Of a stretch of DNA of 64,000 nt, positions 1 through 62,055 are shown piece by piece. Position 1 is the first letter of the stretch. Each line of letters opens with the position of its first letter. Position numbers and translations under genes: made by a program. The notes below the pieces were generated by a model, which saw nothing but the letters and a program-made list of their open reading frames with translations, was not told where the DNA came from and searched no databases. This DNA comes from Neoechinorhynchus agilis (Eukaryota > Animalia > Acanthocephala): the NCBI GenBank assembly GCA_051530055.1, contig JBMGUZ010000004.1, positions 73,867 through 137,866 of the forward strand. Reading direction: 5' to 3'.

Positions 1-1810
1 GGTTATAGTTACGTCATCAAAAAATACGATTGACGTCAAAAAATTATTACAGTGACCTCATGAAAAATGAAGTGACGTAATCAAAAAATTTAAGTTGCGT
101 CATCAAAAAATTTGATTGACGTCATGAAAATTTTTTGATTCTTCCGCGCATGTTGCGACGTCATATGTAAGAGTAATGTCATCAAAAAATTTGAGGGACG
201 TCATCAAGAAATTGAGCGGCGTTATAAAAAAAATTTGAGCCGCAAAATGTTTTGGGACGTAAAAAGAATATTTGATGACGCCACTATATTTTTTATGACG
301 TCGCTTAAATTTTTGATGACGTCAAAAAAAATTTGATGACGTCACTAAAATTTTTGATAATGTCAAAAAAATTTGTTGATGATGTCATTCAAATTTTATA
401 TTTCGTAACTCGAATTGTTTAATGATGTCACAAAATTTATTGATGACTTCACTCAAATTTTTGATGACGTCACCTAAAGATATTGATGACGTCACTCAAA
501 TTGCTCATGACGCCACAACATTTATTGATGACGTCACTCAAATTTTTGAAGACATCACCCGAATTTTTGATGATGTAACAAAAATTATTGATGACGTAAC
601 TCAAATTTTTTTATGACGTAACAAAAATTTTTAATAACGTTACTAAAACTTTTGATGACGTCACTAGAATTGTCGATGACGTAACTGAGAATCTTTGATG
701 ACTTAACAAAATTGTTTGATGACGTCACTCAAATTTTTGATTACGTTACCCAAATTTTTTGATGACGACACGAAATTATATAATAACGTCACAAAATGTT
801 TTGATGACGTCACTCTATATGAGGTCACTCTAATTTTTGATGACGTCACAAAATTTTATTATGACGTCACCCAAATTTCCTATGACGTAACGCAAATTGT
901 TGATGACATCACTCAAATTTTTTGATGACGTCAATCACCTTTGTCGATGACGTCACTCAAATATATGATGACGTCGGTCGAATTATAAATTACGTCACTC
1001 ATATTTTTTTATGACGTCACCAAAATTGTTGATGACGTCACAAAAAGTTTTATGTCGTCACTCAAATTTGTCTATGACGTCACTACAATTTTTTATGACG
1101 TCAATCGGAATTTTCGATGATGTCGAAAAATTTGCTGATAACGTCACTGTAATTTTTTATGACGTCACTATAATTTTTCGATGACGTCGCTCAAATTTTT
1201 GATGCTGTCACAAAATTTGTTGATGACGTCACTCGCAATTTATATTACATCACACAGATTTTTTGATAACGTCACGAAAAAAATTTTGATGACGTCGCTC
1301 AAATTTTCGATGACGTTACTCCATTGATAAAGTCACTATAATTTTTCAAAACGTCTCAAAATTTTTTAATGGCGTCACTCAAATTTTTTTGATGAAGTCA
1401 CAAAATTTGCTGATGACGTCACTCAAATTTTTGATGACGTCAAAAAATTTTTGAGGCCGTCACCCAAATTTTTTATGTCGTCACTAAAATTCTCGATAAC
1501 GTCACAAAAAAATTTTGATGACTTCACTCAAATCCGCTAATAACGTCACAAAATTTTTTGATGACGTCACTTAAATTTGTTAAATACGTCACTCGAATTG
1601 TCGATCACGTAACTCTAATTGTTTGATGACGTCACAAAATTTTCGGATGATGTCACTCGAATTTTTGATTACGTCACAACATTTTTGATGACGTCATTCA
1701 AATTGTTGATGACGTCACCCAAATTTTTTGACGACGTCACAAAATGTTTTGATGCCGTCTCTCAAATTTTTGGGGCGTCACAACAATTTTATGTTACGTT
1801 ACTCAAATTT
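1..1810. repeat. Degenerate ~21-bp tandem satellite (consensus TTTTGATGACGTCACTCAAAT) containing the TGACGTCA palindrome
   Basis: Recurrent ttttgatgacgtcac(t/a)caaa units. The 7-aa periodic pseudo-ORFs (DDVTQIF) give a 21-nt period. Array polarity flips near 245. Confidence 0.9.
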
Positions 1811-2589
1811 TTTATTACGTCCACGCGTGCCACGTTTCTTTATAAGAGGAGCGTGATGGTGGTGGTATCAACGTAGACAAGTTAAATTGAAAAAGGTGGT
1901 CGTTGACTATCGTCATGAGCTGGCAACGTGGTTGAATACGCGTTTGTAATCGTCACAGTTGTGACTATATTCAAAAAACAGTGGGATCTTGGTAGTGACG
2001 TAGAGACAGTTGTGGTCGTGGTGGTCGTCGTCATCGTGAGTCTTTGTAAACCAAAGGTCATGATGGCGTGGTCGCGTACGTGTGCACAAGATGCGCACGT
2101 TCGAAGGCATGATGTTAATATATATAAATACACACAGTGTGCGGTGGATCACTAGGACCGTCGTTTGGTGAAGAACGCCGCAAAGTGCGATAAGTTCCGC
2201 GAAATGCAGATCTCCTGGAACGGAAAATGTTCGAACGCAAATGGCGACTGTGAATACAATATTCGCAGCCACATCCGACTGAGTAACGTTTAATGCTAAA
2301 GTGAGCAAGTGTGGGTGAATGTCAGTGGAAATAGATCTTCTGATCGTTGCCATTGACATTACGGTTACTGCGTTTGCCTTCGGGTGACGCGCAGGAAACT
2401 AAGATAAGGTAAATGATAAAAATCATTGCAGAGATGCTACTGCTAATATAGTTATGCAACACGTGAATCAATACTGTTCACGGTGAAAGGGTTCAATAAT
2501 TGTGAAGGGTGTTTAGCGGCGTCACGTAAAGAAGACGAAGTTTATTATTCTATTAACATTGTGGTGAATGCTTGTTGTCCCTGCTTTCA

Positions 2590-3424: not shown

Positions 3425-4886
3425 ACGTTCTCAGTTCGAATGGGAGAATCCGCTGAACTTAAGCATATCAATAAGCGGAAGAAAAGAAACCAACAGGGAT
3501 TCCCATAGTAATGGCTAATGAACAGGGAATAGTTCATAACTGAATCGCGCTGACTTGTCAGCTGCGAATTGTGGTGTACGATCAGTTTGTGGGTTCAGTT
3601 GCGTGGTAATAAGTCCAGGTTGAACACGGCTTTGGCAGAAGAGGGTGATAGTCCCGTATTTGCTACGCCTTGACTATTGTTCCCTAGAACTGATTTGTGA
3701 GTCGAATTGTATGAGATTGCAATTCAAATATGTGTGGTAAACTCCATACAAAACTAAATATGACGGCGGTGCCGATAGCGAAGAAGTACCGTGAGGGAAA
3801 GTTGAAAAGGACTTTGAAAAGAGAGTTAAATAGTACGTGAAACTGCACATTGAAAAGCAAATGGGTACGCATAAGGTTCGGTCTTGGCAATTCAGATGTG
3901 TTATCTGCTGGTACATACACACACTCGTGTATGTGTACTGCAGCGTACATCGCAATTTGTTGGCTGACGCTCTGCATGACTTTGCCTCATCCGCAGACGC
4001 GTTGAACTTCAACTATTGACTTTGTCGATATTGGTGAATTGACATTGGATGAGTTCACAAGAGCACATATCTATGAGGTAGTCAAATTGCCTTTGCAGGC
4101 AACGGTCGGTTGAGGTTGAGTTTTTTAACTAAAATTGAGCATTCCAATGACGTAATCGCCAGCATCGTTGAATTCTTTCGGTGTTCTTTCACTCACTGTT
4201 TGGCTTGTTCGTCGATGTTGATTGCGGATTCAGTCGGATGTTCGAGAAGATAATGCGGGTAAAACGGCGGCATCATTTGAACCGTCTTGAAACACGGGCT
4301 AAGGAGTTCAACAAATGCGCGAGTTATCCAGATCAATAAAGCTGGATAGCATAGTTAACGCTAGTTTTTTAATGATTGTAATAACCAGCTGCGGTTATTG
4401 GCCGTTAGCCGGGTCATCACCTATGATAGATGGCACATGCAAGGTACTGTTGGTTGTTGTTCGCAATTGAACGTACATGTTGAGACCCGAAAGATGGTGA
4501 ACTATGCCTGAGTAGGATGAAGGCGGAGGAAACTCTGGTGTAGGTCCGCAGCGTTTTCGACGTGCAAATCAATCGTCAGATGTAGGTATAGGGGCGAAAG
4601 ACTAATCGAACAATCTAGTAGCTGGTTCCCTTCGAAGTTTCCCCCAGGAAAGCTGGGGTTGCATAAGACAGTTTTATCTGGTAATGCGAATGATTAGAGG
4701 CATTGGGGACGAATTGTCCTCGAACTATTCTCAAACTTTAAATGAGTAATAAGCTCGGTCACTTCTTCACAGTTGCTTATGCTGTTGCTGAGTGTTGCGT
4801 GTAAATGCGATGGCACCAAGTGGGCCATTTTTGGTAAGCAGAACTGGCGATATGGGATGAATCAAACGTTGAGCTAGGGTGCCAAA
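3425..4886 (+). rRNA. 28S: 28S rRNA 5' fragment (orphan, probably pseudogenic)
   Basis: Conserved LSU motifs ccgctgaacttaagcatatcaataagcgg, gtaccgtgagggaaagttgaaa, gacccgaaagatggtgaactatgcctg, gtaagcagaactggcg. Truncated into satA. Carries substitutions relative to the second copy. Confidence 0.95.
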
Positions 4887-7800
4887 TTAAAACGAAGCAC
4901 AAAGAGTGAGTAAACGAATGCGTTGTCAAATCTCTTGTTTTATTTGATTGATAATGTGTTCCGCAAGCGCGTCTAGATTGAAGTGAAGCACTAGGTGTGA
5001 GTACACGAATGCGTATAAAAACTTCTTATTTTTATTGCATTGATAATTTTTTCCAAAAGCGCGTCTAAATTAAAGCAAAGTACTTAGAGTAAGTAAATGA
5101 ATGCGTTTTCAAATCTCGACTTTTTGTTTAACTGATAATGTTTTCAAAAAGCGATTCGAAATTAAAGTGAAGATCTAAAAGTGAGTACACGAATGAGTTT
5201 TAAAATTGCTTGTTTTTATTGTATAGATAATGTTTTCCAAAAGCGCCTCTAAATTGCACCGAATATCTAAAAATTAGCACACGGATACGTTTTAAAATAC
5301 TGCGTTTTTATTGTATTGATAACGTTTTTTAAAAGCGCGTAAAAATTTAAGTATAGCACTAAAAGTGAGTACACGAATGCGTTTTCAAATCTCCATTTTT
5401 TACTAAAATGACAATGTCTTCCAAAAGCGCGTCTAAATTAAAGCGAAGCACGAAGAGTGAGTAAATGAATGCGTTTTACAATCTCGAGTTTTTGTTTGAT
5501 TGATAATGTTTTCCAAAAGCGTGTCTAAATTAAGGTAAGCACTAAGAATTAGTACACGAATGCATTTTATAATCTCTTCTTTTATTTGATTGATAATGTT
5601 TTCTAAAAGCGATTCTAAATTAAAGTGAAGATCTAAAAGTGAGTACACGAGTGCGTTTTAAAATAACTTGTTTTATTGTGAAGATAATGTTTTCGAAAAG
5701 CGCCTCTAAATTGCACAAAATATCTAAAAATTAGCACACGAATGCGTTTTAAAATTTCGAGTTTTTATTTGATTGATAATGTTTCCAAAAGCGCGTCTAA
5801 ATTAAAGTAAAGATCTAACAGTGAGTACAAGTATGCATTTTGTAATCGCTTGTTTATATTTGATTGATAGTGTTTTCGAAAAGCGCGTCTAACTTAAGTG
5901 AAGAACTTAGAGCGAGCAAACGAATGCGTTTTGAAATTTCGAGATATTATTTTATTGATAATGTTTTCCCAAAGCGCGTCTAAATTAAAGTAGAGATCTA
6001 AGAGTGAGTACACGCATGAATTTTTTAATCTCTTGTTCTTATTTGATGGATAATGTTTTCCAAAAGTGCGCCTAAATTAAAGTGAAGCACTGAGAGTGAG
6101 CACGCGAATGCGTTTTCAAATTTCGAGATTTTATTTGATTGATAATGTTTTCCAAAGGCGCGTCAAATTAAAGATCTAAAAGTGAGTACACGTATGAATT
6201 TTGTAATCTCCTGTTTTTGATTTGATTGATAATGTTTTCCAAAAGTTCGTCTAATTAAAGTGAAGCACTAGGAGTGAGCACACGATTGCGTTTTCAAATT
6301 TATAGTTTTTATATGATTGACAATGTTTTCCAAAAGCCCGTCTAAATTAAAGCAAAAATCTGAGATTGAGTACACGTATGTATTTTGTATACTCTTATCT
6401 TTATTTGATTGATAAGGTTTTCCAAAAGTTCGTCTAATTTCAGTGACGCACCAAGACTGAGCACACGAATACGTTTTTAAATTTCGAATTTTTATTTGAT
6501 TGAAAATGTTTTCCAAATGCGTGTCTAAATTAAAGTAAAGATCTAAGAGTGGGTACACGTATGAATTTTCTAATCTCTTGTTTTTATTTGATTGATAATG
6601 TTTTCGAAGAGCGCGTCACATTTAACTGTAGCACGAAGAGCGAGCACACAAATGCGTTTTCAAATTTCGAGATACTATTTATTTGATAATGTTTTCCAAA
6701 AGCGCGTCTGAATTAAAGTAAAGATCTAAGAGAGAGTACACGTATGCATTTTGTTATCTCTTGTTCTTATTTGGTCGATAATGTTTTCCAAAAGCGCGTT
6801 TAATTTAGGTGAAGCACTTAGATTGAGTACACGAATGCGTTTTAAAATTTCGAGATCTTATTATATTGATAATGTTTTCCAAAAGCGCGCCTAAATTAAA
6901 GTAAAGATCTAATAGTGAGCACACGAATGCGTTTTCAAATTTCGAATTTTTTTTGATTGATAAGGTTTTCCAAAAGCGCGTCCAATTTTAAGTAAAGATC
7001 TAAGAGTGAGTACACGTATGAGTTTTGTTATCTCTTGTTTTTATTTCATTGATAGTGTTTTCCAAAACGCTTCTAATTTAATTAAGCACTAAGAGCGGGT
7101 GCACGAATGCATTTTCAAAATTCGAGATTTTATTCAATTGATAATGTTTTGCAAAAGCGCGACTAAATTAAAGTAAAGATCTAAGGGTGAGTACACGTAT
7201 GAATTTTGTAATCTCTTGTGTTTATTTGATTGATAATGTTTTTCAAAACGCGTCTAATTTAATTAAGCACTTAGAGTGAGTACACGAATGCGTTTTAAAA
7301 TTTCGACTTTTCATTTGATTGATAGTGTTTTCAAGAAGTGCGTCATGCATTTTGTAATCTCGTGTTTTTATTTGATTGATAATTTTTTCCAAAAGCGAGT
7401 CTAATTTAAGTGAAGCACTAAGAGCGAGCACACGAATGCGTTTTCAAATATCGAGATAATATTTGATTGATAATGTTTTCCAAAAGCGCGTCTAAATTAA
7501 AGTGAAGCACTAAGAGTGAGCACACGAATGCGTTTTCAAATTTCGAGATTTTTTTAATTGATAAGGTTTTCCAAAAGCGCGTCTAAATTAAAGCAAGGCA
7601 CTAAGAGTGAATACAAGAATGCGTTCTCAAATCTCTTGTTTTAATTGTATTGATAATGTTTTCATAAAGCGCGTCTAAATTAAAGCGAATCACTAAGAGT
7701 TAGTACATTAATGCGTTTTAAAATCTCGAATTTTTATTTGATGGATAATGTTTTCTAAAAGTGCGTCTAAATTAAAGCGAGGCAGTAAGAGTGAGTACAC

Positions 7801-8765
7801 GAATGCGTTTTCATATCTCTTGTTTTTGTTGTATTGATGAGGTTTTCCATGAGCGCGTCGAAATTGAAGTCAGGATCTTTGGGTGAGAACACGAATGCAT
7901 TTTGTAATCTCTTGTTTTTATATGGTTGATAATGTTTTTCAATAGCGCGTCTGAGTTATGCATTTTGTAATCTCTTCATTTTATTTGATTGATAATGTTT
8001 TTCAAAAGCGCGTCTAAATTAAAGCGAAGCACTAAGAGTGAGCACGCGAATGCGTTTTAAAATTTCGAGTTATTATCTGATTGATAATATTTTCCAAAAG
8101 CGCGTCTAAATTAAAGTAAAGATTTTAGAGTGAGAACACGTATGCATTTCGTAATCTCTTGTTTTTATTTGATTGATAATTTTTTCCAAAAGCGCGTCTA
8201 GGTTAAAGTGAAGCACTGAGAGTGAGTACACGAACGCGTTTTCATCTCTTGTTTTTATTGTGTTGATAATGTTTTTCAAAAGCGCGTCTACTTTCTATTT
8301 TATTGTATTGATAATGTTTTCCGAAAGCGCGTCTAAATTAAGGTTAAGCACTAAGAGTGAGTACACGAATGCGTTTTGAAATCTCTTGTTTTTATTTGAT
8401 TGATAATGTTTTCCAATGCGCGTCTAAATTAAAGTGAAGATCTAAAAGTGAGTACACGAATGAGTTTTCAAATATCTTGTTTTTATTTGATTGGTAATGT
8501 TTTCGAAAAGCGCGTCTAATTTACAATGAAGAACTAAGAATCAGCGCACGAATGCGTTTTCAAATCTCGAGTTTTTATTTGATTGATAATGTTATCCAAA
8601 ATTGCGCCTAAATTTAAGATCTAAGAGTGAGTACACGTATGCATTTTGTAATCTCTTGTTTTTATTTGATTGATAATGTTTTCCAAAAGCGCGTCTAAAT
8701 TAAAGTGAAGCACTAAGAGTTAGCACACGAATGCGTTTTCAAATTTCGAGTTTTCATTTCGTTGA
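4882..8765 (+). repeat. 92-bp AT-rich satellite A array
   Basis: Unit aaattaaagtgaagcactaagagtgagtacacgaatgcgttttcaaatctcttgtttttatttgattgataatgttttccaaaagcgcgtct. Period 92, measured at 32111/32203. Confidence 0.95.
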
Positions 8766-10020
8766 AATGGCTCACAATCAGAAGATATTGCACGAGCACG
8801 TGTTTAAATTTTTAAATTTTATGACTTTTTGCAACGGGTAAATGGCGGACGAAACTTTGACTATCTTACTGCTAAACGCGTTAGGGATTTAACGTGTTTT
8901 CGATACGAACAACGAAAAAAATGAAGCAGCAATAAAACACTGAAGTTGATTACTGTTTTCCCGAACGTAATTTGCTCCAAATCACAAGATGTTGCTTAAG
9001 CACGTGTTAAATTTTTAAATAAATAACGTCATATTTTCGACATAAACAACAAAAAAATAAATCAGCAATAAAGCACCTAAGTCTGTTTCGGTTTTGCACT
9101 ATGTTTTTTTGTCAAAAAAAGAAGATTTTGCATGCGAACGTGAACTAATTTTTAAGCCGATGACATCTTGTTTGCGATGTAAAAAACGAAAAAACCCAAG
9201 CACCAATAAAACAATGCAGATAGTTTTTGTTTTCATGTATGTTATTTGCTGGAAATCGGAAGATATTGCATGAGCACGTGTTTTAATCTTTAAGCTGACG
9301 ACGCCATATTTTCGATGTAAGAAACAAATAAGCTAAAGCACAAATAAAACACTGATGTAGATTTCTGTTTTCCTGCATGTTATTTGTTCAAAATCAGAAC
9401 ATATTGCATGAGAGTGCGTTCTAATTTTAAAACTGGTGAGGTTTTTGGAACGGGTAAACGCCGGGCGTAACTGTAACTTTCTCAATGATTAACGCGTTAT
9501 GGATTCAACATGTTTTCGATATAAACAACGACGAAAATAAAGCGGCAATAAAACAAAGCAGTCGATTTCTATTTTACTGTATGTTATTTGCTCATAATCA
9601 GAAGATATTGCATGAGTACGTGTTTTAATTTTTAAGCTGACGACCTAATGTTATCGATATAAGAAACGAATGAACTAAAGCACAAATCAAACACTGCAGT
9701 CGATTTCGTTTTTCATGTATGTTATTTCCTCAAAATCAGAAGATATTGCATTAGCACGTGTTCTAATTTTTAGGCTCACGGCGCAATATTTTCGATGTAA
9801 AAAACTAAAGGCCCAAGAAAACACTGCAATTGATTTATGTTTTCATGTATGTTATTTGCTCGAAATCAGAAGAACATGTAATCGATGTAAACAACGAAAA
9901 AATAAAGCAATAATAAAACACTGCAGTTGGTTTCTGTTTTCCTGTATGTTATTTCCTCAAAATCAGAAGATATTGCATGAGCACGTGCTTTAATCTTTAG
10001 GCTCACGACGTCATATTTTC
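8766..10020 (+). repeat. Satellite B, mixed ~135-bp and ~205-bp units
   Basis: atcagaagatattgcatgagcacgtg recurs at spacings of ~132-139 or ~204-207. The long units carry a 28S-like insert. Confidence 0.85.
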
Positions 10021-10340
10021 GATGGAGAATTCAGAGCGACGGGAGATAGAATCGTATCAATACCGAAATGAACCGGAGGGTTGATGTATTTTGAGGGTGT
10101 TCCTCCTTTTGCTCTTGTTTCTACTCGCTCAGACGTTTCTTTGGCCTTTTGTTCGACCGTAGCTTTCTTAGTGGTTAATGAAGGTGAATCGCTTTCGCTT
10201 TTCCTATCGTTACCTTTTTTACAATTATCCATATCATACTCCGCAGTAATTTTAGAATCAGGTACAACATGATGAATATCCTCTAAGGCTGGTACCAAGT
10301 CCCTAGTAATTGTCGAAATATTCGCGGTCTTTACCAAAGC
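10021..10340 (-). other. Unidentified dispersed-repeat fragment with 108-aa ORF; internally deleted inverted copy at ~49640-49790
   Basis: gataggaaaagcgaaagcgattcaccttca...cccgtcgctctgaatt is shared with 49650-49790. No recognisable domain. Confidence 0.5.
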
Positions 10341-10734
10341 CGCATTCTCCTTTGTGGCCGCTTCACGATCCGATCGTTACGGGCTTCAATTTCGAACTGA
10401 ATAGCCTCCGCTATTATATTTTTAACTGTGCTCATCCCTTCAATTAATGAACCCTTTTGAGTTTCAGTAGCTCATTTAAAGCACTAATTTAGTGCAACAT
10501 CAACAAGAGCGAAATACTTGGTCAATTCTCATTTACCGTTCATTGATTAGAGCACGTTGACGAGAGAAAGAAAACGCTGACCTTGACGTTTAGAGGATGC
10601 TGACAAGAGCGAACGCTGTCGATAGAGAAACAGATCTTCCATTGTTTTCAACCAGAAAAATCCGTCTCGATGTACTTCATTCCCTCCAAGCAAAGGGAGA
10701 GCAATTGAGCACCATTTTTGGCATGTGAGAGCAA

Positions 10735-13635: not shown

Positions 13636-16600
13636 GAATAACACAACAACTCAACAGCCTTTTGCATCAACAGCTGCTATAACCACTACAACAACAATAA
13701 TATACAATGTCGATCCAGATGGGGCCCTTAAGTGTTCTATGTGCAAAATTGCGGCCATTGGAAAGACGAAATTTCGCTTATTTAACGAACATCTGGCAAA
13801 AGTTCACGGAATTACTGGTCTTGTATGGCGGTGCCCGATATGTACAAAGTATGAACACTGTGAACATCGTAGCATGTCCGTTCATCTGAGAAAGTGCCAA
13901 TCGAATTATCCTGACAAGTACCGATTTCTACTCGATGATATATGCAAATCAAGTGTTCACATTAATGTTTTTGCTAGTCAATCGTCCGTGTTGTACATAC
14001 CCGGCGATGACAAACCAATTGAATGTTTGCTTTGCGACTACTCTGTGATTGGAACTGGGAAGTTCAATTCGATGGAGCATCACTTAACCTCGACTCACAG
14101 AGTGACGGACTGCCGATTTCGATGCGGATTGTGTCTCGCAAATTTTGGAACTCTACCTCAAGTACGTAGTCATTACAATCATTGCCGAACGAATATTGGG
14201 AATAGCAGCTCTAATGGTCCTATGGAGTCAAAAGAAAAGCTCGATGGCACTAGTACTGATATTCATCACTCAATGATTGACAAAGCGGATTACAGTAGCA
14301 AGTCAAATTGTGCATCCGATTTTCCCAGCGAGCCAAAAGCAAATTATAACGAAGCGAGCGATATCGATATCGAATCTGTTTATTCTAGTCAAACACAAGA
14401 TGAGAATTTATGTCTCAATAATCCGAATCGTGAAAGTCGGAACAGCGTTCTGCAAAATGAATACAGAACCGATGCAAGTGCTACAGCTACATTCGTTAAT
14501 GGGCATATTGAATTACCTACCTCGTCGTTCCGGCCTACAAACGATCACACCGAACGAAATGAATTGCCTACCTCATCGTTCCGGTCTACGTACGACCATG
14601 TTGAACAGATGGTATTGTGTACCCCTTCGCAACGTCGTGCGGACGACCATGTTGTAAATATCGAATTGTCTACCTCATCACACCAGCCTGCGTATGATTA
14701 CGTTGAGCAAACGGATAGGTCTACCTCATATAACCGGCCTATATATGATCATGCTGATCGAGTGCAATTACCTACCTCGCCTAATCACCTAAAGTTTTTG
14801 ATAGAATCTGGAGATCGTGATCCGAATGTCGCTCAAAATACCTCCGCCCCACACTCGACGATCTTCACAGTTGCTGAAGCTTATGAGTTCATTTTGACGT
14901 GTCTAAAGTCTTCGAATTTGCATCCTCGATATATATTTTTCCTCAAATCCATCGCCTCTCTACTTCGTGAGCGTCGACTTGAATTTGATCAGGCTTTTCT
15001 GGACAAAGTCTACGGTGTTTATTCGGACTACCTTCGATGCGGGGTCAAAAATAATCGCCCGTCTTTCACATCAGCAGCGAAAGCGATCGGGCTAAAGATT
15101 ATCAAGATAAGAAAGTCAAGCCGAATGAGCCTGAATGCAGTTGCATTTCACGTCCACTGTAACCCCGCACAAGGACACATCGTACAAAGGAAAATTCTGG
15201 AAAACCTTCTCGAGGAGAAAAGCTACTATGAATCAATTATGAAATATGTAACTGACACGTCCCTTTCATTGAATGAATTGATAGATAATATGCAAAAAGG
15301 TAGCATTATATCGGACTTACTTGTGCTGTGGGCTGCTGCTAACACATATAAGTGTGACTTCGATGTCCATGGATCCGATGGTCAGCACATACGGATTCGT
15401 GCTCGTCATACAGCTACGAACTGCTATTCAATGTGGCTCGAAGATTCGAATCTACTCCCTTGTGTTCGTAGCCGCGCCTTAAACCGAACACAACACCGTG
15501 CAATCAATCGAAGGCGTAATCGAGCGCTATACTTTGCGAACACTAAACAGCTCGCAAGTGAAGTATTTCGAGACGCCTCAATGAAAGATTGTAAATTGTC
15601 GGCAGGCGACATTGATTGTCACTTTCGAAAACTATTTGAAGAACCGGAGTCAGCCGATATGAATTTTGAGACAGGTGATCCGACGGGAAGCTCATGGTCG
15701 CTCGTAACGGCTGACGAAATCTGGTCGGCCATGAATGGAATTAATGCTTCAAGTGCGATAGGCGTGGATCGTATAAATGTTCGCCAGGTAAAAGCCTTCG
15801 ATAAGTTAATGGTTGGACCGGTTCTAATTTTTAACATCTCCCTCCAAATCGGATCTCCGCCTTCCGCGTGGGCAGAAAATAAAACGATACTGATCCCAAA
15901 GAATGGTGCTGATGCTCGTAAGCTAAAATCGATTGACGGTTGGAGGCCGATCACAATCTCGTCTGTGCTGATGCGAATCTTCCACCGGACAATCCTGTCG
16001 CGAATGAGAGCGTCTGTCGAGCTCGATGAAAGTCAAACCGCCTTCAAACAAGAAGCTTGTCACACTAATCTCCTTACGTTGAAGACCATTATTAAGGCAT
16101 CTCGGTCCAAAAAGGAAAAACTTTCCATTGCAATATTGGACATTAAGAACGCGTTTGACACAATCTCGCATGAAACACTTCGACTTGCTCTTGAAAGGAA
16201 GAATGTCGACAAGGTAATCAGCCGATACATAATGAAAATGTTCATGTCCAGCTTCACGAGAATCCACACACCTATGAGTCAGCCATCACAACCAATTCGT
16301 TTCGACCGGGGCGTGAAACAAGGAGATCCATTGTCGCCACTCCTATTTTCTATCTGCCTTGACGATGTACTAAAGGGCCTCAGAGAAACAGGGCTTGGTT
16401 ATCGACTCGGAACGTCTTACATCCCTCAAATTGTTTATGCCGACGACATCGTCCTGCTAGCTCGTACAGAGGAAGAGTTAAAGGAAATGATGCAAATTTT
16501 CTTCGACAAAATAAAATCAAAAGGGATGAACTTGTCGCCTAGCAAGTGTCGGTCCTACTCGCAGGCATACAAGAAAGGGAAGTTGTTTATAGGAACTGCA

Positions 16601-17643
16601 CCATTCCTGAACATCGAAGAGAGCCCGGTGGTTCCTGTTCTCGAAGGCGATCCAGTCAAGTATTTGGGGGGCACACCATGGTCAAATACCAGAAGGCAAG
16701 ACGTCATACACCGGATTGACGAACTGTTCGGCCGTACAAAAGTTGCCCAGTTGAGCCCAACGCAAGCCGCACATCTTTTGAATGATTACGGGATTCCAAA
16801 GCTGATAGCGGAGCTGCAGAGCGCAGTAGATCTTTCCATCACGGATCTGGAACACATTGAACAGCACTACAGGACATGCCTTAAAAGACTTCTATTTCTC
16901 CCGAATTATCTCAATAACGGCATTGTTTACCTACCCCTGGGTCGCGGCGGACTTGGATTCCGATCAATTAAATTTGAGGTAATGTCGTGTCGGGTGAGAG
17001 CCCTTATACAGTTAGAAAGTCGGTATCCTGAGCTAGCCGTCAATGCAACAATCAAACAAACAACTGCAGACTATCTTACGTCAATAAGCGCAGGCGATGA
17101 TTCTAATATAAGGAAGTGTTTCAATGCCCACCTAGAGTCGCAATGGAGGCAGGCTACCACGCAGTCGAACGGGATTAGAAGTTTCACACGTGGTCTGCTA
17201 GATCGTCGTCTAGTGTCCTTCCGCTATCGTCAGGGACCTCACACGCAATACAAAGAACAGGTCAAAATGCGATGTCAACTATTAGAAGTGAGATCTGTAA
17301 TGACCAGGGTAGACAACCGCTCAAACGATATGTGTCGACACTGCAACACTAGGAAGGAAACACCTGCCCACGTTTTAAATGGATGCGACAGAATGGGGAG
17401 AGCGATGACGACCAGGCACGATGCGGTGCAGCGTCGGTTCGTATGGGCGCTTAAGAAAAGGAGACCTGGTGCGGTAATCCTGGAAAAAAATAACATTTAC
17501 GACCCAGGTGGACGACTACACAAGCCCGATCTAATCGTAGTGGATACAAGCGAAAAGAAGGCAACAATAATTGATTTCGCTGTCTACTACGAGACAGATA
17601 ACGATAATAGGGCAGGTGAAGTAATGCTCGGGAAAGAAAAGAA
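13636..17643 (+). mobile_element. R2-like non-LTR retrotransposon 'D' (near full length, both termini lost)
   Basis: Four zinc fingers (13733-14185), RT (WRPITISS, GVKQGDPLSPLLF, YADD at 16436), CRHC..H..C knuckle, REL motifs RHD, KPD, DFA. Homology stops at KEK before the conserved KY. Confidence 0.93.
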
Positions 17644-17662
17644 GACCTGTACTGGTTTATAG
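13739..17662 (+). CDS. R2-like polyprotein (4 ZF, OTU-like domain, RT, REL endonuclease), 1307 aa; frame is open upstream to 13622, C-terminus truncated
   Basis: Uninterrupted ORF. The first ZF (CSMC) starts two codons before the annotated ATG. Confidence 0.9.
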   Translation: MCKIAAIGKTKFRLFNEHLAKVHGITGLVWRCPICTKYEHCEHRSMSVHLRKCQSNYPDKYRFLLDDICKSSVHINVFASQSSVLYIPGDDKPIECLLCDYSVIGTGKFNSMEHHLTSTHRVTDCRFRCGLCLANFGTLPQVRSHYNHCRTNIGNSSSNGPMESKEKLDGTSTDIHHSMIDKADYSSKSNCASDFPSEPKANYNEASDIDIESVYSSQTQDENLCLNNPNRESRNSVLQNEYRTDASATATFVNGHIELPTSSFRPTNDHTERNELPTSSFRSTYDHVEQMVLCTPSQRRADDHVVNIELSTSSHQPAYDYVEQTDRSTSYNRPIYDHADRVQLPTSPNHLKFLIESGDRDPNVAQNTSAPHSTIFTVAEAYEFILTCLKSSNLHPRYIFFLKSIASLLRERRLEFDQAFLDKVYGVYSDYLRCGVKNNRPSFTSAAKAIGLKIIKIRKSSRMSLNAVAFHVHCNPAQGHIVQRKILENLLEEKSYYESIMKYVTDTSLSLNELIDNMQKGSIISDLLVLWAAANTYKCDFDVHGSDGQHIRIRARHTATNCYSMWLEDSNLLPCVRSRALNRTQHRAINRRRNRALYFANTKQLASEVFRDASMKDCKLSAGDIDCHFRKLFEEPESADMNFETGDPTGSSWSLVTADEIWSAMNGINASSAIGVDRINVRQVKAFDKLMVGPVLIFNISLQIGSPPSAWAENKTILIPKNGADARKLKSIDGWRPITISSVLMRIFHRTILSRMRASVELDESQTAFKQEACHTNLLTLKTIIKASRSKKEKLSIAILDIKNAFDTISHETLRLALERKNVDKVISRYIMKMFMSSFTRIHTPMSQPSQPIRFDRGVKQGDPLSPLLFSICLDDVLKGLRETGLGYRLGTSYIPQIVYADDIVLLARTEEELKEMMQIFFDKIKSKGMNLSPSKCRSYSQAYKKGKLFIGTAPFLNIEESPVVPVLEGDPVKYLGGTPWSNTRRQDVIHRIDELFGRTKVAQLSPTQAAHLLNDYGIPKLIAELQSAVDLSITDLEHIEQHYRTCLKRLLFLPNYLNNGIVYLPLGRGGLGFRSIKFEVMSCRVRALIQLESRYPELAVNATIKQTTADYLTSISAGDDSNIRKCFNAHLESQWRQATTQSNGIRSFTRGLLDRRLVSFRYRQGPHTQYKEQVKMRCQLLEVRSVMTRVDNRSNDMCRHCNTRKETPAHVLNGCDRMGRAMTTRHDAVQRRFVWALKKRRPGAVILEKNNIYDPGGRLHKPDLIVVDTSEKKATIIDFAVYYETDNDNRAGEVMLGKEKKTCTGL

Positions 17663-23800: not shown

Positions 23801-24724
23801 GGGAACATAGTTTGGCATAGCCGACTGTCTTCATGGTCGTCGCTGTCTGAGATAAGCGTACCTTCGCGGTTGCAGAACGCTGGTATTTCTGCCACCTTCG
23901 AACTTGCGGCTGTACTTAAAAGGCACGCCTTGCTGTCCTCCATGGATAAGTCCGTTCTATGACTGTCGATTGTATCTACACTGCTAACTGACAACGGATC
24001 TGCTGCTAATAAAGGTCCGATCGTTTCGTCCGTAGTTTCCGTAATTCCGACACTGACCGAAGGGGGCGTAGGTGCATCGCCATCTTTGGTAATTGCTAAG
24101 CTACACTGATTGCAATGTGAACGCACAGCCGGTAGATTTCGAAAAGATTTGAGGCAGTTACAGCAAAGAAACGTTATTGTCTTGGCGCCATGCGAGCTTT
24201 TTGCGTGTGCCATAATACTGTTGTACCGCCCAATGCCTAAGAGAGACAACTGGCAGGCGGGACACCTAGCCGGCGTGTCATCTATGTTTGAGTACATTAT
24301 GCTTACGGAATCCCTGCGTTCCGAGTGAGGTGATTTTGTCGACGCTTCAGTCATTAACTGTCGATATCTGTTCGGGTATTTTTCCTTGCATCTTCTCAAA
24401 TGGATACCCACACTGCGAGATTCAATGTGTTCGTAGTTATCACATAATGGGCACTGCCAGGCTGCTACGACGGTGTTATGTTGTGCTCTTAGGTGCTCTA
24501 TATGTAGCTTGTTTCGCGTTCGGCCTATGAATTGATCCTCACACAAATGGCAAGCAATATTTTGGACCTCTGTCGACAAAGTAGCATAGCAGATGTTCGC
24601 GTAAGTTGAACTGTTTGCTGTTGTGCTGCTGACTGTCTCTCAGAATTATCTGGGACAAGAGTATCGTCGGTTGTCCTCTCCGCCTCATCATCTAAAATGA
24701 GAGCGGAGTACCTATGGCCTTCTG
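20840..24724 (-). mobile_element. R2-like element 'A' (5' junction in 28S, decayed ORF, 3' end lost)
   Basis: Follows 28S gcgcgggtaaacggtggac. 4 ZF at 24103-24552, OTU-like 23050-23412, RT 21777-22640, REL 20830-21120. Confidence 0.92.
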
Positions 24725-26949
24725 GTCCACCGTTTACCCGCGCTTAAATTAATTTCTTCACTTTAACATTCAGAGAACTGGGCAGAAATCACATTGCGTC
24801 AACACCGATTACAGCTATCGCAATGCTTTGTTTTAATTAAACAGTTGGATTCCCCTTGTCCATACCAGTTCTAGGCCAGCTGTTTAACGCTGATCGGATC
24901 CCCGCGCAAGAAGCGAGCGTACCCGTTTGGATACGTCGAACAAACGCGGAGCATTGCTATCGCTGCCCACAGTACGCAGCACCAAGTTCCGTCCTCGAAA
25001 TCGACTCTTTCGCAAGAGCAAATAACTGAGACAGATCCAAGAGTCGACAACATACCGCTTCTCGCGACAGCCCGGCCAGCTCAGCTTGTAGAGCCAATCC
25101 TTTTTCCGAAGTTACGGATCTAATTTGCCGACTTCCCTTGCCTACGTTTCCCTATCGACTAGAGGCTACTCACCTTGGAGACCTGCTGCGGAAATCAGTA
25201 CGAACAGGTACGGTCTCAATATTCTCGCACCCAGATTTTCAAGGACAATACGAAGCGCTCGGTACATCGCAGGAATCGCGCTGCATTACGGAACGTGTAC
25301 CCTATCAACAGACGATCTAATTCCAGGGATAAAGTTCCTAACAAAGAAGAGAAAACTCTTCCCCAGACTTCGTATAGTTATTCTCTGGGATTGCTCGTGT
25401 CACCACTTATGCTGAACATCATCTGCCCAAGAAGAACATCTGAATAGATCAAGCATAAACCGCATCCTGGCTCGGGAATATTAACCCGATTCCCTTTCGA
25501 TTGTATTGCGCAATGCAACACGCTTAATCACGAATTTGCACGTTTTCTTAGGATCGGCTGATCCATGTCCAAATGTTGTTCACATGGAACCTTTCTCCAC
25601 TTCAGTCTTCAATGCTCTCATTTGAATACTTGCTACTACCACCAAGATCTGCACTAGCGGCGGCTTAACTCCACCTCACGGTGCAAGTTTCAACACCACC
25701 GCATACGCCCTTCTACACGTCAAGCCATTTGTACATTTGTGTCTGGCATCGACGGTCAAGCATGGATATACGTCTCCAGCGCCATCCATTTTCAGGGCCA
25801 GTAAATTCGGCAGGTGAGTTTTTACACACTCCTTAGCGGATTCCTACTTCTGCGGCCACCGTCCTGCTGTCAATATCGACTGACACCTTTCATGGTATCT
25901 AATGAGAGGCACTTTTGGCACCCTAGCTCAACGTTTGGTTCATCCCACATCGCCAGTTCTGCTTACCAAAAATGGCCCACTTGGTGCCATCGCATTTACA
26001 CCCGACACTCAGCAGCAGCATAAGCAACTGTGAAGAAGTGACCGAGCTTATTACCCATTTAAAGTTTGAGAATAGGTCGAGGACAATTCGTCCCCAATGC
26101 CTCTAATCATTCGCTTTACCAGATAAAACTGTCTTATGCAACACCAGCTTTCCTGGGGGAAACTTCGAAGGGAACCAGCTACTAGATGGTTCGATTAGTC
26201 TTTCGCCCCTATACCCAAATCTGACGATTGATTTGCACGTCAAAAACGCTACGGACCTCCACCAGAGTTTCCTCCGGCTTCATCCTACTCAGGCATAGTT
26301 CACCATCTTTCGGGTCTCAACATGTGCGCTCAATTGCGAACAACAACCAACAGTACCTTGCATGTGCCATCCATCATAGGTGATGACCCGGCTAACGGCC
26401 AATAACCGCAGCTGGTTATCACAATCATTAACAAACTCGCGTTAACTATGCTATCCAGCTTTATTGATCTGGATAACTCGCGCATTTGTTGAACTCCTTA
26501 GCCCGTGTTTCAAGACGGTTCAAATGATGCCGCCGTTTTACCCGCATTATCTTCTCGAACATCCGACTGAATCCGCAATCAACATCGACGAACAAGCCTA
26601 ATGCTCAATTTTAGTTTAAAAACTCAACCTCAACCGACCGTTGCCTGCAAAGGCAATTTGACCACCACATAGATATGTGCTCTTGCGAACTCATCCAATG
26701 TCAATTCACCAATATCGACAAAGTCAATAGGTGAAGTTCAACGCGTCTGCGGCAGAGGCAAAGTCATGCAGAGCGTCAGCCAACAAATTGCGATGTACGC
26801 TGCAGTACACATACACGAGTGTGTGTATGTACCAGCAGATAACACATCTGAATTGCCAAGACCGAACCTTATGCGTACCCATTTGCTTTTCAATGTGCAG
26901 TTCCACGTACTATTTAACTCTCTTTTCAAAGTCCTTTTCAACTTTCCCT
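24725..26949 (-). rRNA. 28S: 28S rRNA fragment running up to the R2 insertion region
   Basis: Minus-strand motifs gcagcaggtctccaaggtg, agatccgtaacttcgg, gtgatttctgcccag, aagcgcgggtaaacgg. 5'-truncated at 26949. Confidence 0.95.
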
Positions 26950-26951
26950 TA

Positions 26952-27237
26952 GCATGAACTATTTTTAGACCACATGCTTCTCTGCCATGCTCAGAGAGCT
27001 CTCAATTACGTCAAACCACAATGAACCCCTTTTGTCACATGCTTCTCTGTCGCGCTCAGAGAGCTATCAATTAGGTCAACAACACGAACCTTTTTGCACC
27101 GCACGCTTCTCTGCCCAGCTCATAGAGCTTTCAATTACGTCACACCATCATGAACTCTTTTTACCACATGCTTCTCTGTCGTTCTCAGAGAGCTATCAAT
27201 TAGGTCAACAACATGAACCTTTTTGCACCGCACGCTT
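26952..27237. repeat. 64/65-bp tandem repeat (~4.5 copies, alternating 129-bp dimer)
   Basis: ca(t/c)gctt anchors at 26973, 27038, 27102, 27167 and 27231. Confidence 0.9.
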
Positions 27238-30725: not shown

Positions 30726-30769
30726 GTTTAACGAATGCTCATGGAATATCTAGTTTTGAGCAAATAACA

Positions 30770-31345
30770 TACAGGACAACAGCAATCGAGCTTGGTGTTT
30801 GATATCTGCTTTATTTTTTTCGTTGTTTACATCGAAAACATGTTTAATCAATAATGCGTTCACTATTCATGAAGTCATACCAACGTCCGCCTTTTACTCG
30901 TTTCAAAAACGTCACCAGTTTTAAAAATTAGAACACGTGCTCACGCAATATCTTCTCATTTTGAGCAAATAGCATACAGGAAAAAAGAAATCGACTGCAT
31001 TTTTTTTATTGGTTCCTAAGTTTTTTCGTTTTTAATATCAAAAACGTGACGTCATCAGCTTAAAAATAGTACACGTGCTCGTGTAATATCTTCATATTTT
31101 AGGCAAATAACATACAGGAAAACCGAAATCGAGTGCAGTGTTTTAGTGCTGCTTGAGCTTTTTCCTTGTGTAAATGGAAAACATGTTGTTACGTCCGCCG
31201 TTCACTCGCTTAGAAGGCGTCATCAGTTTTATAAATTCAAAGACGTACTCATGCAATATATTCAGATTTTTAGTAAATTACATACACGAAAAAAGAAATC
31301 GAATGCAGTGTTTCACTGGCGCTTCAGTTTATTCTCTTTTATTCC
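30770..31345 (-). repeat. Satellite B (inverted)
   Basis: cacgtgctcatgcaatatcttctgatt-type units. Confidence 0.8.
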
Positions 31346-31889
31346 GAAAACATGACGTCATCGATGCGGATCTTATGTCGAACAACAACTAACATGAGTT
31401 TAATTTTGATCGTTAAAACCAATCATCAGCCAATAATTAACATCATCTTATGTGACGTAATTATTTCCAATATCAACAAAGCTCCACCGAGAAATCAACC
31501 ATTGGTTAATTTCAACTCTAATGTCAATACATCGTAGCACAATGGCTATTTCGTCTTAATTAGGCGAGACAATTAAGCAAGCACCATATCACGGTTTACA
31601 CTACCAAATATAATACTCAGCATAGCAAAAGCCAATGCAGGCATTGGCGAAACGACGGCGGAAAGGGCAGCCATCTCATGTATAACAAGGTTTTGAACCC
31701 TGCTAAAAAAAAGGTGATACAACGTTTGCAAAAACACAGTTTTGGTTTGAAACCGAAACACTAAACATCCCTACTTCAACCAAGAACGATATTCAACATC
31801 CGTTTACGCCATTTATATGAGTCATCCGCAGTTCCAACTGACCCGTAGGCTAGACAATTTTTCACGTAAACAAAACACCATCGATTGGC

Positions 31890-34800: not shown

Positions 34801-35400
34801 AATTGAGTTCACGGATGCGTATTCAAATCTCTTGTCTTCATTTGATTGATAATGTTTTCCGAATGCGCGTCTAAATTAAAGCGAAGCATTAAGAGTTAGT
34901 ACACGAATGCGCTATAAAATCTCGAGTTTTTATTTGATTGATAATGTTTTTCAAAAGCGCGTCTAAATTAAAGCGAAGCACTAAGAGTGAGTACACGAAT
35001 GCGTTTTCAAATCTCTTGTTTTTATTTGATTGATTATGTTTTCCAAAAGCGCGTCTAAATTAAAGCGAAGCGCGAAGAGTGAGTATTCGAACGCGTTTTA
35101 AAATCTCTTATTTTTATTTGATTGATAATGTTTTCCAAGTGCGCGTCAAAATTAAGGTGAAGATCTAAAATTGAGTACACGAACGCGTTTTGAATTCTCA
35201 TATTTTTATTTGATTGGTAATGTTTTCCAAATGCTCGTCTAAATTAAAGTGAAGATCTGGGAGTTAGCACAATAATGCATTTTGTAATCTCTTATTTTTA
35301 TTGTATTGATATTGTTTTCCAAAAACGCGTCCAAATTAAAGTCAAGCACTAGGAGGTTGTACACAAATGCGTTTTCAAATCTCGGTTTTTATTTGGTTGA
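31890..35400 (+). repeat. 92-bp satellite A array (homogeneous at its left end)
   Basis: Near-consensus units at 32.0-32.5 kb. Confidence 0.95.
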
Positions 35401-35880
35401 TATGGCTCACAATCAGAAGATATTGCATGAGCATGTGTTTAAATTTTTAAATTTTATGACTTTTTGCAACCAATAAATGGCGGACGAAAGTTTTACTAGC
35501 TTAATGGTAAACGCGTTATGGATTGAATGTGTTTTCGATATAAACGGCGGAAAAAATAGAGCAGCAATAAAACACCGGTGTCGATTTCTGTCTTTCTGTA
35601 GGTTATTTGCTCATAATCTGAAGATGTTGCTTAAGCACATGTTCTAATTTTGAAGTAGATAACGTCATATTTTCGATATAAACCACGAAAAAAATAAAGC
35701 AGCAATAATGCACCTAAGTCTATTTCGGTTTGCCACTATGTTATGTTGTCAAAATCAGAATATATTGCATGAGAACGTATTCTAATTTTTAAACCGATGA
35801 CTTCTTGTTTGCGATGTAAAAAACCCAAGCACCAATAAAACACTGCAGTAGATTTCTGTTTTCCTGTATGTTATTTGTAA
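35401..35880 (+). repeat. Satellite B
   Basis: Same satA/satB junction as at 8766 (atggctcacaatcagaagatattgc). Confidence 0.85.

Positions 35881-39011: not shown

Positions 39012-39042
<31 letters not shown>
39012..39042 (+). rRNA. 28S: 31-bp 28S fragment (+1..+31 of the R2 site)
   Basis: tagccaaatgcctcgtcatctaattagtgac. Confidence 0.9.
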
Positions 39043-39790
39043 ATTTTGAATCGAAAAAACTTACAAACACGCGGGTAAATGGTGGACGTAACTATGACTT
39101 TCCTAATTTCCGACAAAGATTCCCTAGGACCCAAAGAAACTATCGAAACTAAAGAAAGCTCATCAGTTTACCCCCATCCGCCGGGTACGAAGCGCTTCCG
39201 CGCTTAAGATGGCGATCTTCCAAACAATCAACCAACTGTTTCAACTGCATCAACTGCTGATTCGACTTATTTTTTCACCCAAGAGACAAAAAAGTCGAGA
39301 GTTAACTCCACATCGACCGGAAGCGAAGCGCATTTTTCAGATGGCGCTTTTCCCGATGATATGGAAGCCAAAAAGCGTTTGAGTGCGACAATAGCAACAA
39401 CATCATCACATATTTCAACTTCTGATCGCCCAAACAAATCCAATGAACTCACAGACGAACTCGCAACGGTTCAGCGTACCGAATCTCACAACACCAATGT
39501 TAATGCCGTGAACTCTTCGCAAATCGAAGTCGCGTGCCCTCTTGAATCGGATAAGCCTCTTGAATGCCCAATCTGTTTATTGCAGGTTGTTGGAAGAACA
39601 AGAAATCGGATTTTTCTGGACCACATGGCCGTCATTCACAATAAGAATTTAATCTCGTGGGTATGTCAACTATGCAAATCGTTTCGTAGTGAAGTTCCAG
39701 GGAGTGTCGGCTCTCATTAGAAACTTACTAGCAAACCGCAAGAAGGATGTCTTACTTGAGCAAACAATTTTAATCGTTCATATCGTGCAT
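39043..39790 (+). mobile_element. R2-like 5' fragment 'F' with a degenerate 28S leader and zinc fingers
   Basis: 39069-39107 acgcgggtaaatggtggacgtaactatgactttcctaat; CPIC..HMAVIH and CQLC..H fingers. Confidence 0.75.
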
Positions 39791-49784: not shown

Positions 49785-50355
49785 ACGTCGTGAGCCTAAA
49801 AATTGGAGCACGTGCTAATGCAATATCTTCTGATTTTGAGGAAATAACATACAGGAAAACAGAAACCGACTGCAGTGTTTTATTATTGCTTTATTTTTTT
49901 CGTTGTTTACATCGATTACATGTTAAATCCATCAGTCAAAGTTACGTCCGCCGCTTACTCATTGCAAAAAACGTTATAAGTTTTAAAAATTAAAACACGT
50001 GCTCATGCAATATCTTCTGATTTCGAGCAAATAACATACAGGAAAACATAAATCAACTGCAGTGTATAATTGGGCCTTTAGTTTTTACATCGAAAATATT
50101 GCGTCGTGAGCCTAAAAATTAGAACACGTGCTAATGCAATATCTTCTGATTTTGAGGAAATAACATACATGAAAAACGAAATCGACTGCAGTGTTTGATT
50201 TGTGCTTCAGTTCATTCGTTTCTTATATCGATAACATTAGGTCGTCAGCTTAAAAATTAAAACACGTACTCATGCAATATCTTCTGATTATGAGCAAATA
50301 ACATGCAGTAACATAGAAATCGACTGCTTTGTTTTATTGCCGCTTTATTTTCGTC
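49785..50355 (-). repeat. Satellite B (inverted)
   Basis: Reverse complement of ~9500-10020. Confidence 0.85.
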
Positions 50356-50469
50356 GTTGCAGCCTCCAACTACGCCCCCGATTCTCGTGTCGAAAATGCC
50401 AACAATCTAGCTCGGACGACCCCATCGCGAGAACCTGAAAGTAGAGAGCTGTGAGCTCTTGCGACGAGA

Positions 50470-61909: not shown

Positions 61910-62055
61910 GGGCGATGTTCAAGACGTCATTCAACATTTTGTTGACGTCACCGAAACTTTTGATGATGTCACCGAAATTTTTGATGACGTCACAAAATTT
62001 TTGATGACGTCACAAATTTTTTTGATGACGTCACCAACATTTTTGATGACGTCAT
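61910..62055 (+). repeat. Short patch of the 21-bp TGACGTCA satellite
   Basis: ttttgatgacgtcacaaaat x ~6. Confidence 0.85.

Follow-up and report, generated by a model that had tools for sequence, protein, structure and literature searches.

A 28S-derived half-target of R2 within a satellite of Neoechinorhynchus agilis, probably used as an ectopic landing site

Why do R2 retrotransposons and debris of 28S rRNA genes cluster with a satellite in the genome of the acanthocephalan Neoechinorhynchus agilis? The question arises in a 64-kb stretch of DNA (hereafter the window), the final 64 kb of a 138-kb contig (C4; JBMGUZ010000004.1, positions 73,867 to 137,866) in an assembly of 46 Mb. The window is a mosaic of ribosomal DNA (rDNA) pieces, R2 elements, and three satellites, namely the 92-bp satellite A (satA), the 138-bp satellite B (satB), and a 454-bp repeat. 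R2 is a model site-specific retrotransposon which is under development as a gene-insertion tool, and therefore the parts of its target that are needed in living genomes matter practically. An initial annotation of the window had seen in the long units of satB a degenerate 28S target of R2 with the cleavage-site bases deleted, a cut-and-deleted scar that could act as an uncleavable decoy, and had linked this segment to the clustering. The link to the clustering holds and the decoy does not. The long satB units very probably carry a 39-nt upstream half of the R2 target (with the full upstream motif RUM and an imperfect cut site), which was amplified with the satellite and served R2 as an ectopic landing site; such use of satB would explain why R2/28S debris clusters with it.

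The 28S-like block of satellite B

SatB is a satellite DNA with a period of 138 bp (TRF), arranged in head-to-tail arrays with higher-order variants. Long units recur at a spacing of 205, ~340, or 616 bp and carry an extra segment of ~67 bp, which includes the 28S-like block. Positions in 28S are counted from the R2 cut site (GG|TA, between -1 and +1); canonical 28S denotes the universal eukaryotic sequence and host 28S the R2-interrupted copies of this genome. Across the whole assembly, 18 copies of the long unit were collected by DNA search and further ones with a sequence-only model, whose positions 47, 74, and 85 correspond to -37, -10, and +1. The arrays and blocks of the window are as follows.

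8743..10025, plus strand: satB array of 138-bp monomers with two long units, directly after a 92-bp satA array
8835..8874, plus strand: 28S-like block (-37..+2) in a satB long unit; 29/37 identical to canonical and 24/28 to host 28S
8875..8893, plus strand: rest of the extra segment, aacgcgttagggatttaac; not demonstrably 28S (103 of 2000 shuffles score equally)
9451..9490, plus strand: 28S-like block in the second satB long unit; 30/37 identical to canonical 28S
30738..31353, minus strand: satB array
30861..30900, minus strand: 28S-like block in a satB long unit
31188..31208, minus strand: 28S-like block, truncated (-37..-17), with ...GTAAC followed by AACATG of the monomer across an internal deletion
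35382..35877, plus strand: satB array
35470..35509, plus strand: 28S-like block; the satB long unit that holds it comes first after a satA array, in the arrangement seen at 8760
49787..50359, minus strand: satB array
49933..49961, minus strand: 28S-like block (-37..-9), followed by a 19-nt deletion with loss of the cut-site region

The copies had been annotated correctly at 8835 and 9451 (plus strand), 30900 and 31208 (minus strand), and 35470 (plus strand), and the hand counts of 29/37 and 30/37 were reproduced exactly as ungapped identity to the 37-mer; the copy placed near 49925 is present, with its position at 49961 on the minus strand. In the copy at 8835, the core (8835-8862) corresponds to -37..-10 and the cut-site region is degenerate (cttaCTGCTA). 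The block at 9451 lies 616 bp further on, a distance of four 138-bp monomers plus the extra segment. Six matches to the core pattern were found in the window against 0.33 expected, and none of 100 shuffles reached six. Genome-wide, the model search gave 135 matches, 28 of them full length and 25 of these distinct, which bears out the annotated amplification within satB. Copies of the extra segment lie on contigs C1, C2, C3, C4, C14, and C49, mostly in blocks of R2-riddled rDNA debris. On C3 (6142397-6142551), a derived 98-bp repeat combines the extra segment's 3' part, beginning at GTAAACGCG, with the first ~75 nt of the satB monomer, which shows that the long units are still being remodelled.

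The descent of the block from 28S is secure. The consensus of the extra segment (tttttgcaa-CGAGTAAACGGCGGACGTAACTATGACTGTCTTAATGGTA-aacgcgttatggatttaac, where the block in capitals is the 28S-like part) matches host 28S at 26 of 28 positions, including the host-specific GGACG. Its Smith-Waterman score against host 28S is 24, compared with 12.4 +/- 1.5 for dinucleotide shuffles, none of which reached 24 in 500 (z about 8). Universal eukaryotic 28S has GA at -23/-22; the R2-interrupted copies of the host, which read CGGGTAAACGGTGGACGTAACTATGACT before the element, have AC, and the satellite copies share this AC. Finally, no single copy comes as close to 28S as the consensus does. Over -37..+2, the consensus of the 25 distinct copies agrees with canonical 28S at 35 of 39 positions, with one inserted T, and the host AC accounts for two of the four mismatches. 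A chance likeness of an AT-rich satellite to 28S could appeal to the single copies, which are just 21-30/37 identical to 28S, but the shuffles, the shared host-specific variants, and the consensus that surpasses every copy make it next to inconceivable.

What derives from 28S is a single, sharply bounded block of 39 nt (-37..+2). No homology to 28S was found upstream of -37, and on both sides the block is embedded in 138-bp satellite monomers and not in a 28S rRNA gene. At its downstream end, the 25-copy consensus reads GACTGTCTTAATGGTA, which is 28S -13..+2 plus an extra T, with GG|TA retained; the reported deletion of the cleavage-site bases hence describes the degenerate copy at 8835 and not the family. 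For the 19 nt after +2, comparison with the first 120 nt of downstream 28S gave a score of 9 against 6.35 +/- 1.22 for shuffles (reached by 103 of 2000), with the best alignment elsewhere in 28S, and comparison with the whole 3' part of 28S was at chance level too. The resemblance to tagtgacgcgcatgaatggattaac that had been reported for this stretch is therefore not significant, and TAGCCAAATGCCTCGTCATCTA is absent from the satellite units, as had been claimed. A search of 8000-10500 with Rfam at a permissive threshold gave no match to large subunit rRNA, the block being too short and degenerate for the 3401-position model.

These boundaries bear directly on the proposal that an R2-cut target was repaired with a loss of ~27-30 bp immediately downstream of the cut, so that -37..-1 was joined to +28..+50, and then persisted as an uncleavable decoy soaking up R2 protein. 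In its favour, the upstream block is genuine 28S up to the R2 site, ACGCG and ATGGATT recur after +2 in the order that they have in 28S +29..+47, and a deletion could plausibly have been seeded by R2 cleavage. A scar would, however, require the downstream block to be 28S +28..+50; its similarity is at chance level, with a best alignment at another position of 28S, and so there is no evidence of an internal cut-and-deleted scar. The family consensus moreover keeps GG|TA. Nor is the site uncleavable: R2-derived insertions occupy it, some of them between two stretches of satB, and two have their 3' junction exactly at +1. Taken together, these observations make the scar and decoy proposal highly improbable.

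R2-derived insertions in satellite B units

At least four R2-derived insertions lie in satB copies at the position that R2 uses in 28S. The R2 of the window to which they were compared is the following.

13739..17662, plus strand: intact R2 open reading frame (ORF) of 1307 aa, the reference for R2 identity (RVT_1, E 6e-34)

In the PDB, this 1307-aa protein is most similar to proteins of R2 retrotransposons, R2Tg among them (E about 1e-76), and more distantly to R2Bm (4e-34); R2Tg has been placed in the A clade (PMC12222951).

Case (a) lies at C1:19364476-19364875, with a 95% identical duplicate at C1:4807940-4808341. Its satB 5' half (model positions 14-76) ends in ...AACTATGACT (...CGAGTAAACGGCGGACGTAACTATGACT) and is followed by a 294-bp insert and then by the satB 3' half from TGGTA (model positions 81-129). 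Over its last ~100 nt, the insert shares 73% identity (E 3e-12) with the R2 3' end next to 28S at locus L009, and its nt 30-100 correspond to ORF ends in several R2 copies; the insert is a 5'-truncated R2. Case (b) was found at C1:239228-239305 and C2:547825-547901, where an upstream half of satB type (A at -35 and C at -26, against G and T in the 28S type) runs to GACT and there meets an R2 5' end. The element in the C1 copy has a recognizable reverse transcriptase (RVT_1, E 1e-28; 39% identical to the window R2 over 500 aa, tblastn, E 1e-103) and a CCHC/endonuclease (RLE) region 37.5% identical to that of the window R2. The same copy (L086:727-3489, minus strand) has a 920-aa ORF of which only the last ~85 residues, the CCHC region, are R2-like; its reverse transcriptase is in a separate ORF, and neither Pfam nor the PDB gave a match for the long stretch in between.

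In case (c), at C2:548 kb, the junction ...gcgtaataaatgcatgcc|TAAGCGCGTTATGGATTTAAC (...aataaatgcatgcc|TAAGCGCGTTATGGATTTAAC; ...catgcc|TAAGCGCG) falls exactly at +1, and the same 14-nt R2 terminus also abuts TAGCCAAATGCC at window position 39011. The 3' untranslated region (UTR) of this R2 has no detectable similarity to other R2 copies beyond the last 14 nt. Case (d), at C1:19367030-19367429, occurs three times in a 3.1-kb tandem repeat and has a satB 5' half to -21, followed by a ~297-bp R2 fragment whose CCHC region is 55% identical to residues 1199-1240 of the window R2 (42 aa, E 3e-8). The end of the fragment, ...aaataaaccgagtctc (...gagtctc), joins TGAACGTGTTATGGATTTAAC (TGAACGTGTTATGG; TGAACGTG) at model position 85, exactly +1. 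The 3.1-kb repeat extends over C1:19366500-19373650 in at least three copies, each unit of which comprises satB halves, the short R2 fragment, and 65/129-bp repeats of the CTCTCTGAGC type as at window positions 26953-27237. A strict pattern search for further junctions of R2 3' ends with satB returned the case at C2:548 kb only.

The 3' junctions are thus exactly at +1 in two of three instances (cases c and d) and within 3 nt of it in the third (case a). Cases (a) and (d) are 3'-terminal or internally shortened copies with half of a single satB unit on either side; between them, the two halves lack 4-21 nt of the unit. A permuted satB long unit of 197 nt separates cases (c) and (b) at C2:547.8-548.0 kb, as would be expected to remain if adjacent 205-bp long units had each received an insertion. 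The three different R2 tails, the two filled sites, and the 5' truncations bear the mark of target-primed reverse transcription (TPRT), and we infer that the insertions were made by R2's own endonuclease and reverse transcriptase. On this reading, the block was amplified passively along with the satellite; R2 protein would bind the upstream motif of the satB block and nick the satellite at or near GG|TA; R2 RNA would then be copied in by TPRT, and the outcome would be 5'-truncated and near-full-length R2 copies within satellite units.

Junctions between R2 and satB could conceivably also stem from ectopic recombination or gene conversion in these scrambled heterochromatic blocks, with R2-inserted 28S and the 28-nt 28S-like stretch of satB as partners. 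The regions are mosaics in which some blocks are duplicated or tandemly amplified; at C2:81.4 kb, a satB 5' half has been joined to the 5' domain of 28S, and at C1:19.364 Mb, an internal R2 fragment has been joined to the end of a satB monomer. However, the upstream halves beside R2 are of satB type (A at -35, C at -26) and not of 28S type. The alternative is further weakened because the 3' junctions share just 1-2 nt with 28S: crossovers would be needed within this short shared sequence, and yet three different R2 tails join satB no more than 3 nt from +1. Two short inserts with satB on both sides restore one unit minus 4-21 nt and, together with 5' truncation, bear the TPRT signature. We therefore regard recombination as improbable and retain insertion by R2 itself as the preferred explanation.

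Other joins of satB were also noticed. At C2:81469-81545 (L076), the 5' half of a satB long unit breaks off inside the 28S-like block and continues as the 28S 5' domain (GAGGGAAAGTTGAAAAGGACTTTGAAAAG...); this join is a recombinant and not an R2 junction. At C1:239380-239660 (L016, minus strand), ~260 bp of 28S downstream of the R2 site are followed by the 3' end of another retroelement-like sequence, which joins satB at the AAC of ...GGATTTAAC and not at the R2 position. At C2:99141 (L071, minus strand), a satB long unit is broken just after the cut-site region by a sequence starting TGTATTGTAGTGTATTGTATGCAACGG..., which may be another mobile element that uses or disrupts the site.

How good a target satB offers can be judged against the rules known for R2Bm, for which cryo-electron microscopy (cryo-EM) and mutagenesis defined RUM at -34..-22 and the cut-site motif RASIN at -6..+1 (Wilkinson et al., 2023; PMC10499050). 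RASIN is TTAAGG|T, with the rule T-6 T N A N N T+1; R2Bm tolerates one extra base between RUM and RASIN, and with +6..+37 mutated, cleavage and TPRT stay at wild-type level in vitro (PMC10499050). R2Tg reads the same target region via different contacts (PMC12222951). The RUM of the satB consensus, GTAAACGGCGGAC, matches canonical GTAAACGGCGGGA at 11 of 13 and host GTAAACGGTGGAC at 12 of 13 positions. Its cut site is TTAATGG|TA against TTAAGG|TA, with the T at +1 kept and one T inserted inside RASIN; the spacing is +1 and positions -5 and -3 are off by the rule of R2Bm, which may not be the rule of this host's R2. The 28S sequence downstream of the cut (TAGCCAAATGCC...) is absent after +2 in satB, and the remainder is not significantly 28S-like.

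Several points weigh against the use of satB as an R2 landing site and are best considered together. Because of the extra T inside RASIN, the satB site is suboptimal by the R2Bm rule. Occupancy is low, with ~4 independent events in at least 25 copies, in contrast with the 48 inspected assembled 28S 3' halves, all of which follow an R2 end. The mean column conservation of the 28S-like core (0.85) is no better than that of the satellite flanks (0.83-0.87), and so there is no sign of selection for function. A search allowing up to 3 mismatches did not find the uninterrupted host sequence of -9..+2 in the assembly, and that stretch of satB is therefore compared solely with the universal eukaryotic sequence. 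For case (a), the 3' junction can be placed only to within about 3 nt. Case (c) is identified by its 14-nt terminal motif and its position alone, with no R2 protein homology upstream. Lastly, the regions are recombination-scrambled mosaics, and some junctions could therefore be of non-TPRT origin. The low occupancy fits the flaw in RASIN together with the missing downstream sequence, and the satB site is likely a poorer target than 28S.

Origin of the block and R2 junctions in genuine 28S

The following R2 junctions in genuine 28S, used for comparison, lie in the window beside other rDNA pieces.

24724..24740, minus strand: 5' junction of an R2 within a real 28S gene, where 28S is missing from about -21 onward
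39012..39042, plus strand: 28S +1..+31 directly after an R2 3' end (...aataaatgcatgcc|TAGCC)
39072..39099, plus strand: 28S-type block of the GGTGG type (-37..-10), immediately upstream of an R2 5' end within a head-to-tail R2 chain
2133-2288: 5.8S
3449-5024, plus strand: 28S 5' part
24652-26946, minus strand: 28S 5' part

The loss at 24724..24740 has a counterpart in one satB-borne insertion, which has a similar target deletion. In the mini-block at 39070-39099, 28S homology starts from about -38/-39, within two bases of the start of the satB block. At all full-length R2 5' junctions (L001, L002, L018, L037, L041, and window 39072-39099), 28S ends at ...AACTATGACT and -9..-1 is uniformly lost; together with motifs in the 5' UTR, this uniform loss suggests upstream ribozyme cleavage with a propagated junction deletion. 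The R2 3' ends at 28S 3' halves (e.g., L009-L018, window 39012, and 63112) belong to many lineages and have a common terminal AATAAATG-N6 motif. No uninterrupted R2 site occurs in any assembled 28S copy (0 matches at up to 3 mismatches in the whole assembly), and the functional rDNA is presumably unassembled.

The assembled 28S flanks of R2 (L001-L018) read GGTGGACG, GGATTATTGAG, and CCCTGTCTGCAGCCTAGCG in normally invariant stretches, where universal 28S has GGCGGGAG, GGATTAACGAG, and CCCTATCTACTATCTAGCG, respectively; the differences reflect either rRNA changes specific to the lineage or the decay of silenced copies. At -26, satB retains the canonical C. Adjoining the 5.8S and internal transcribed spacer (ITS), arrays of a 21-bp repeat with the palindrome TGACGTCA occupy window positions 1-1821 and 61923-62058, where 18S/ITS1 would be expected.

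The block could be a captured genomic piece of 28S that ended at an R2 break. A second route, compatible with use of satB as a target, is that it was copied not from 28S DNA but from the 28S leader of a ribozyme-processed R2 RNA. The ribozyme would cut the 28S/R2 co-transcript ~36 nt upstream, so that the end of the cDNA carries 28S -36..-1; R2 would integrate into an ordinary satB unit, and its body would then be lost while the leader remained. The sharp start of homology at -37/-36 and the nearly coincident start of the mini-block at 39070-39099 would suit this route. The R2 5' UTRs carry GTTTACCC (or TTTATCC) ~85 nt inside the element, and these 8 nt complement 28S GGGTAAAC at -36..-29 as a P1 stem would; further into the 5' UTR, GATGGCGA resembles J4/2 of the hepatitis delta virus (HDV) ribozyme, both features having been read by eye. 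Published R2 ribozymes cut 9 to 36 nt upstream, and leaders of matching length are duplicated at junctions (PMC3774820). On the other hand, no ribozyme match was obtained with Rfam, the nested minimum-free-energy fold has z = -0.6, and the hand-fitted HDV fold is unconvincing. SatB matches 28S over -9..+2 at 10 of 11 positions, better than the 5' ends of the R2 lineages found here, all of which lack 28S -9..-1, and the 19 nt after +2 match no R2 end. The leader route is a credible possibility, though less likely than not.

The resemblance to published junctions has its limits. In the work of Eickbush, Burke and Eickbush (2013; PMC3774820), duplications and deletions of 28S at R2 5' junctions stem from upstream ribozyme cleavage. 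As there, short 28S blocks of ribozyme-cut length (9-36 nt upstream) travel with R2 and uniform deletions are propagated, like the loss of -9..-1 in this genome. Those blocks, however, sit at R2 junctions in 28S, whereas the satB block stands alone, without R2, in most units, and for this species the ribozyme is putative, being suggested by sequence motifs.

Implications and comparison with known R2 targets

The decoy idea, which was the original appeal of the finding, does not hold. A different functional proposal is that satB is a maintained refuge or sink of R2 off the rDNA, with dozens of harmless landing sites outside rRNA genes, rather than a neutral by-product. If so, it would help this worm to maintain its unusually large number of R2 lineages, draw insertions away from functional rDNA, and drive R2, 28S debris, and satB to spread together; it would also amount to in vivo proof that 39 bp of upstream 28S without the downstream part suffice for complete R2 integration. 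We consider such a refuge unlikely, and the satB site appears to be a by-product rather than a selected decoy or refuge. As an ectopic landing site that arose as a by-product, satB offers a natural experiment, in which a flawed 39-bp half-target without downstream 28S would still have taken R2 from several lineages. The satB insertions agree with the in vitro and cryo-EM results in that the upstream motif drives targeting, and they point to one escape route of R2 from rDNA.

In the literature, we found no report of a satellite-embedded R2 target. Like the canonical target in 28S, the satB site has the block -37..+2 with T at +1 and R2 3' junctions at +1, and its 5' junctions lose a few upstream bases, as in the 28S copies of this genome. 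Unlike the canonical target, it sits in a non-coding 138-bp satellite, has no 28S past +2 and an extra T in RASIN, and is rarely occupied. The layout at C2:547.8-548.0 kb (R2, short target remnant, R2) is that of the head-to-tail R2 chains of this genome, with the difference that the spacer is satellite with a 28S-like half-site and not genuine 28S.

In Bombyx mori, rare insertions of R2Bm and R1Bm outside 28S are on record (Xiong et al., 1988, re-examined in PMC10499050 and cited in PMC10257491), and one known non-28S insertion of R2 is described as having RUM and RASIN at the right spacing (PMC10499050). The two situations are alike in that R2 enters a non-rDNA site which offers RUM-like and RASIN-like motifs. 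The Bombyx site is single and fortuitous, with limited similarity to 28S, whereas the satB site is truly 28S-derived, is present in dozens of copies, and has been struck several times by different R2 lineages. In essence, the satB insertions are kin to the known rare non-rDNA insertions of R2 at RUM/RASIN-like sites, and what is new is a 28S-derived half-target that has been multiplied by a satellite.

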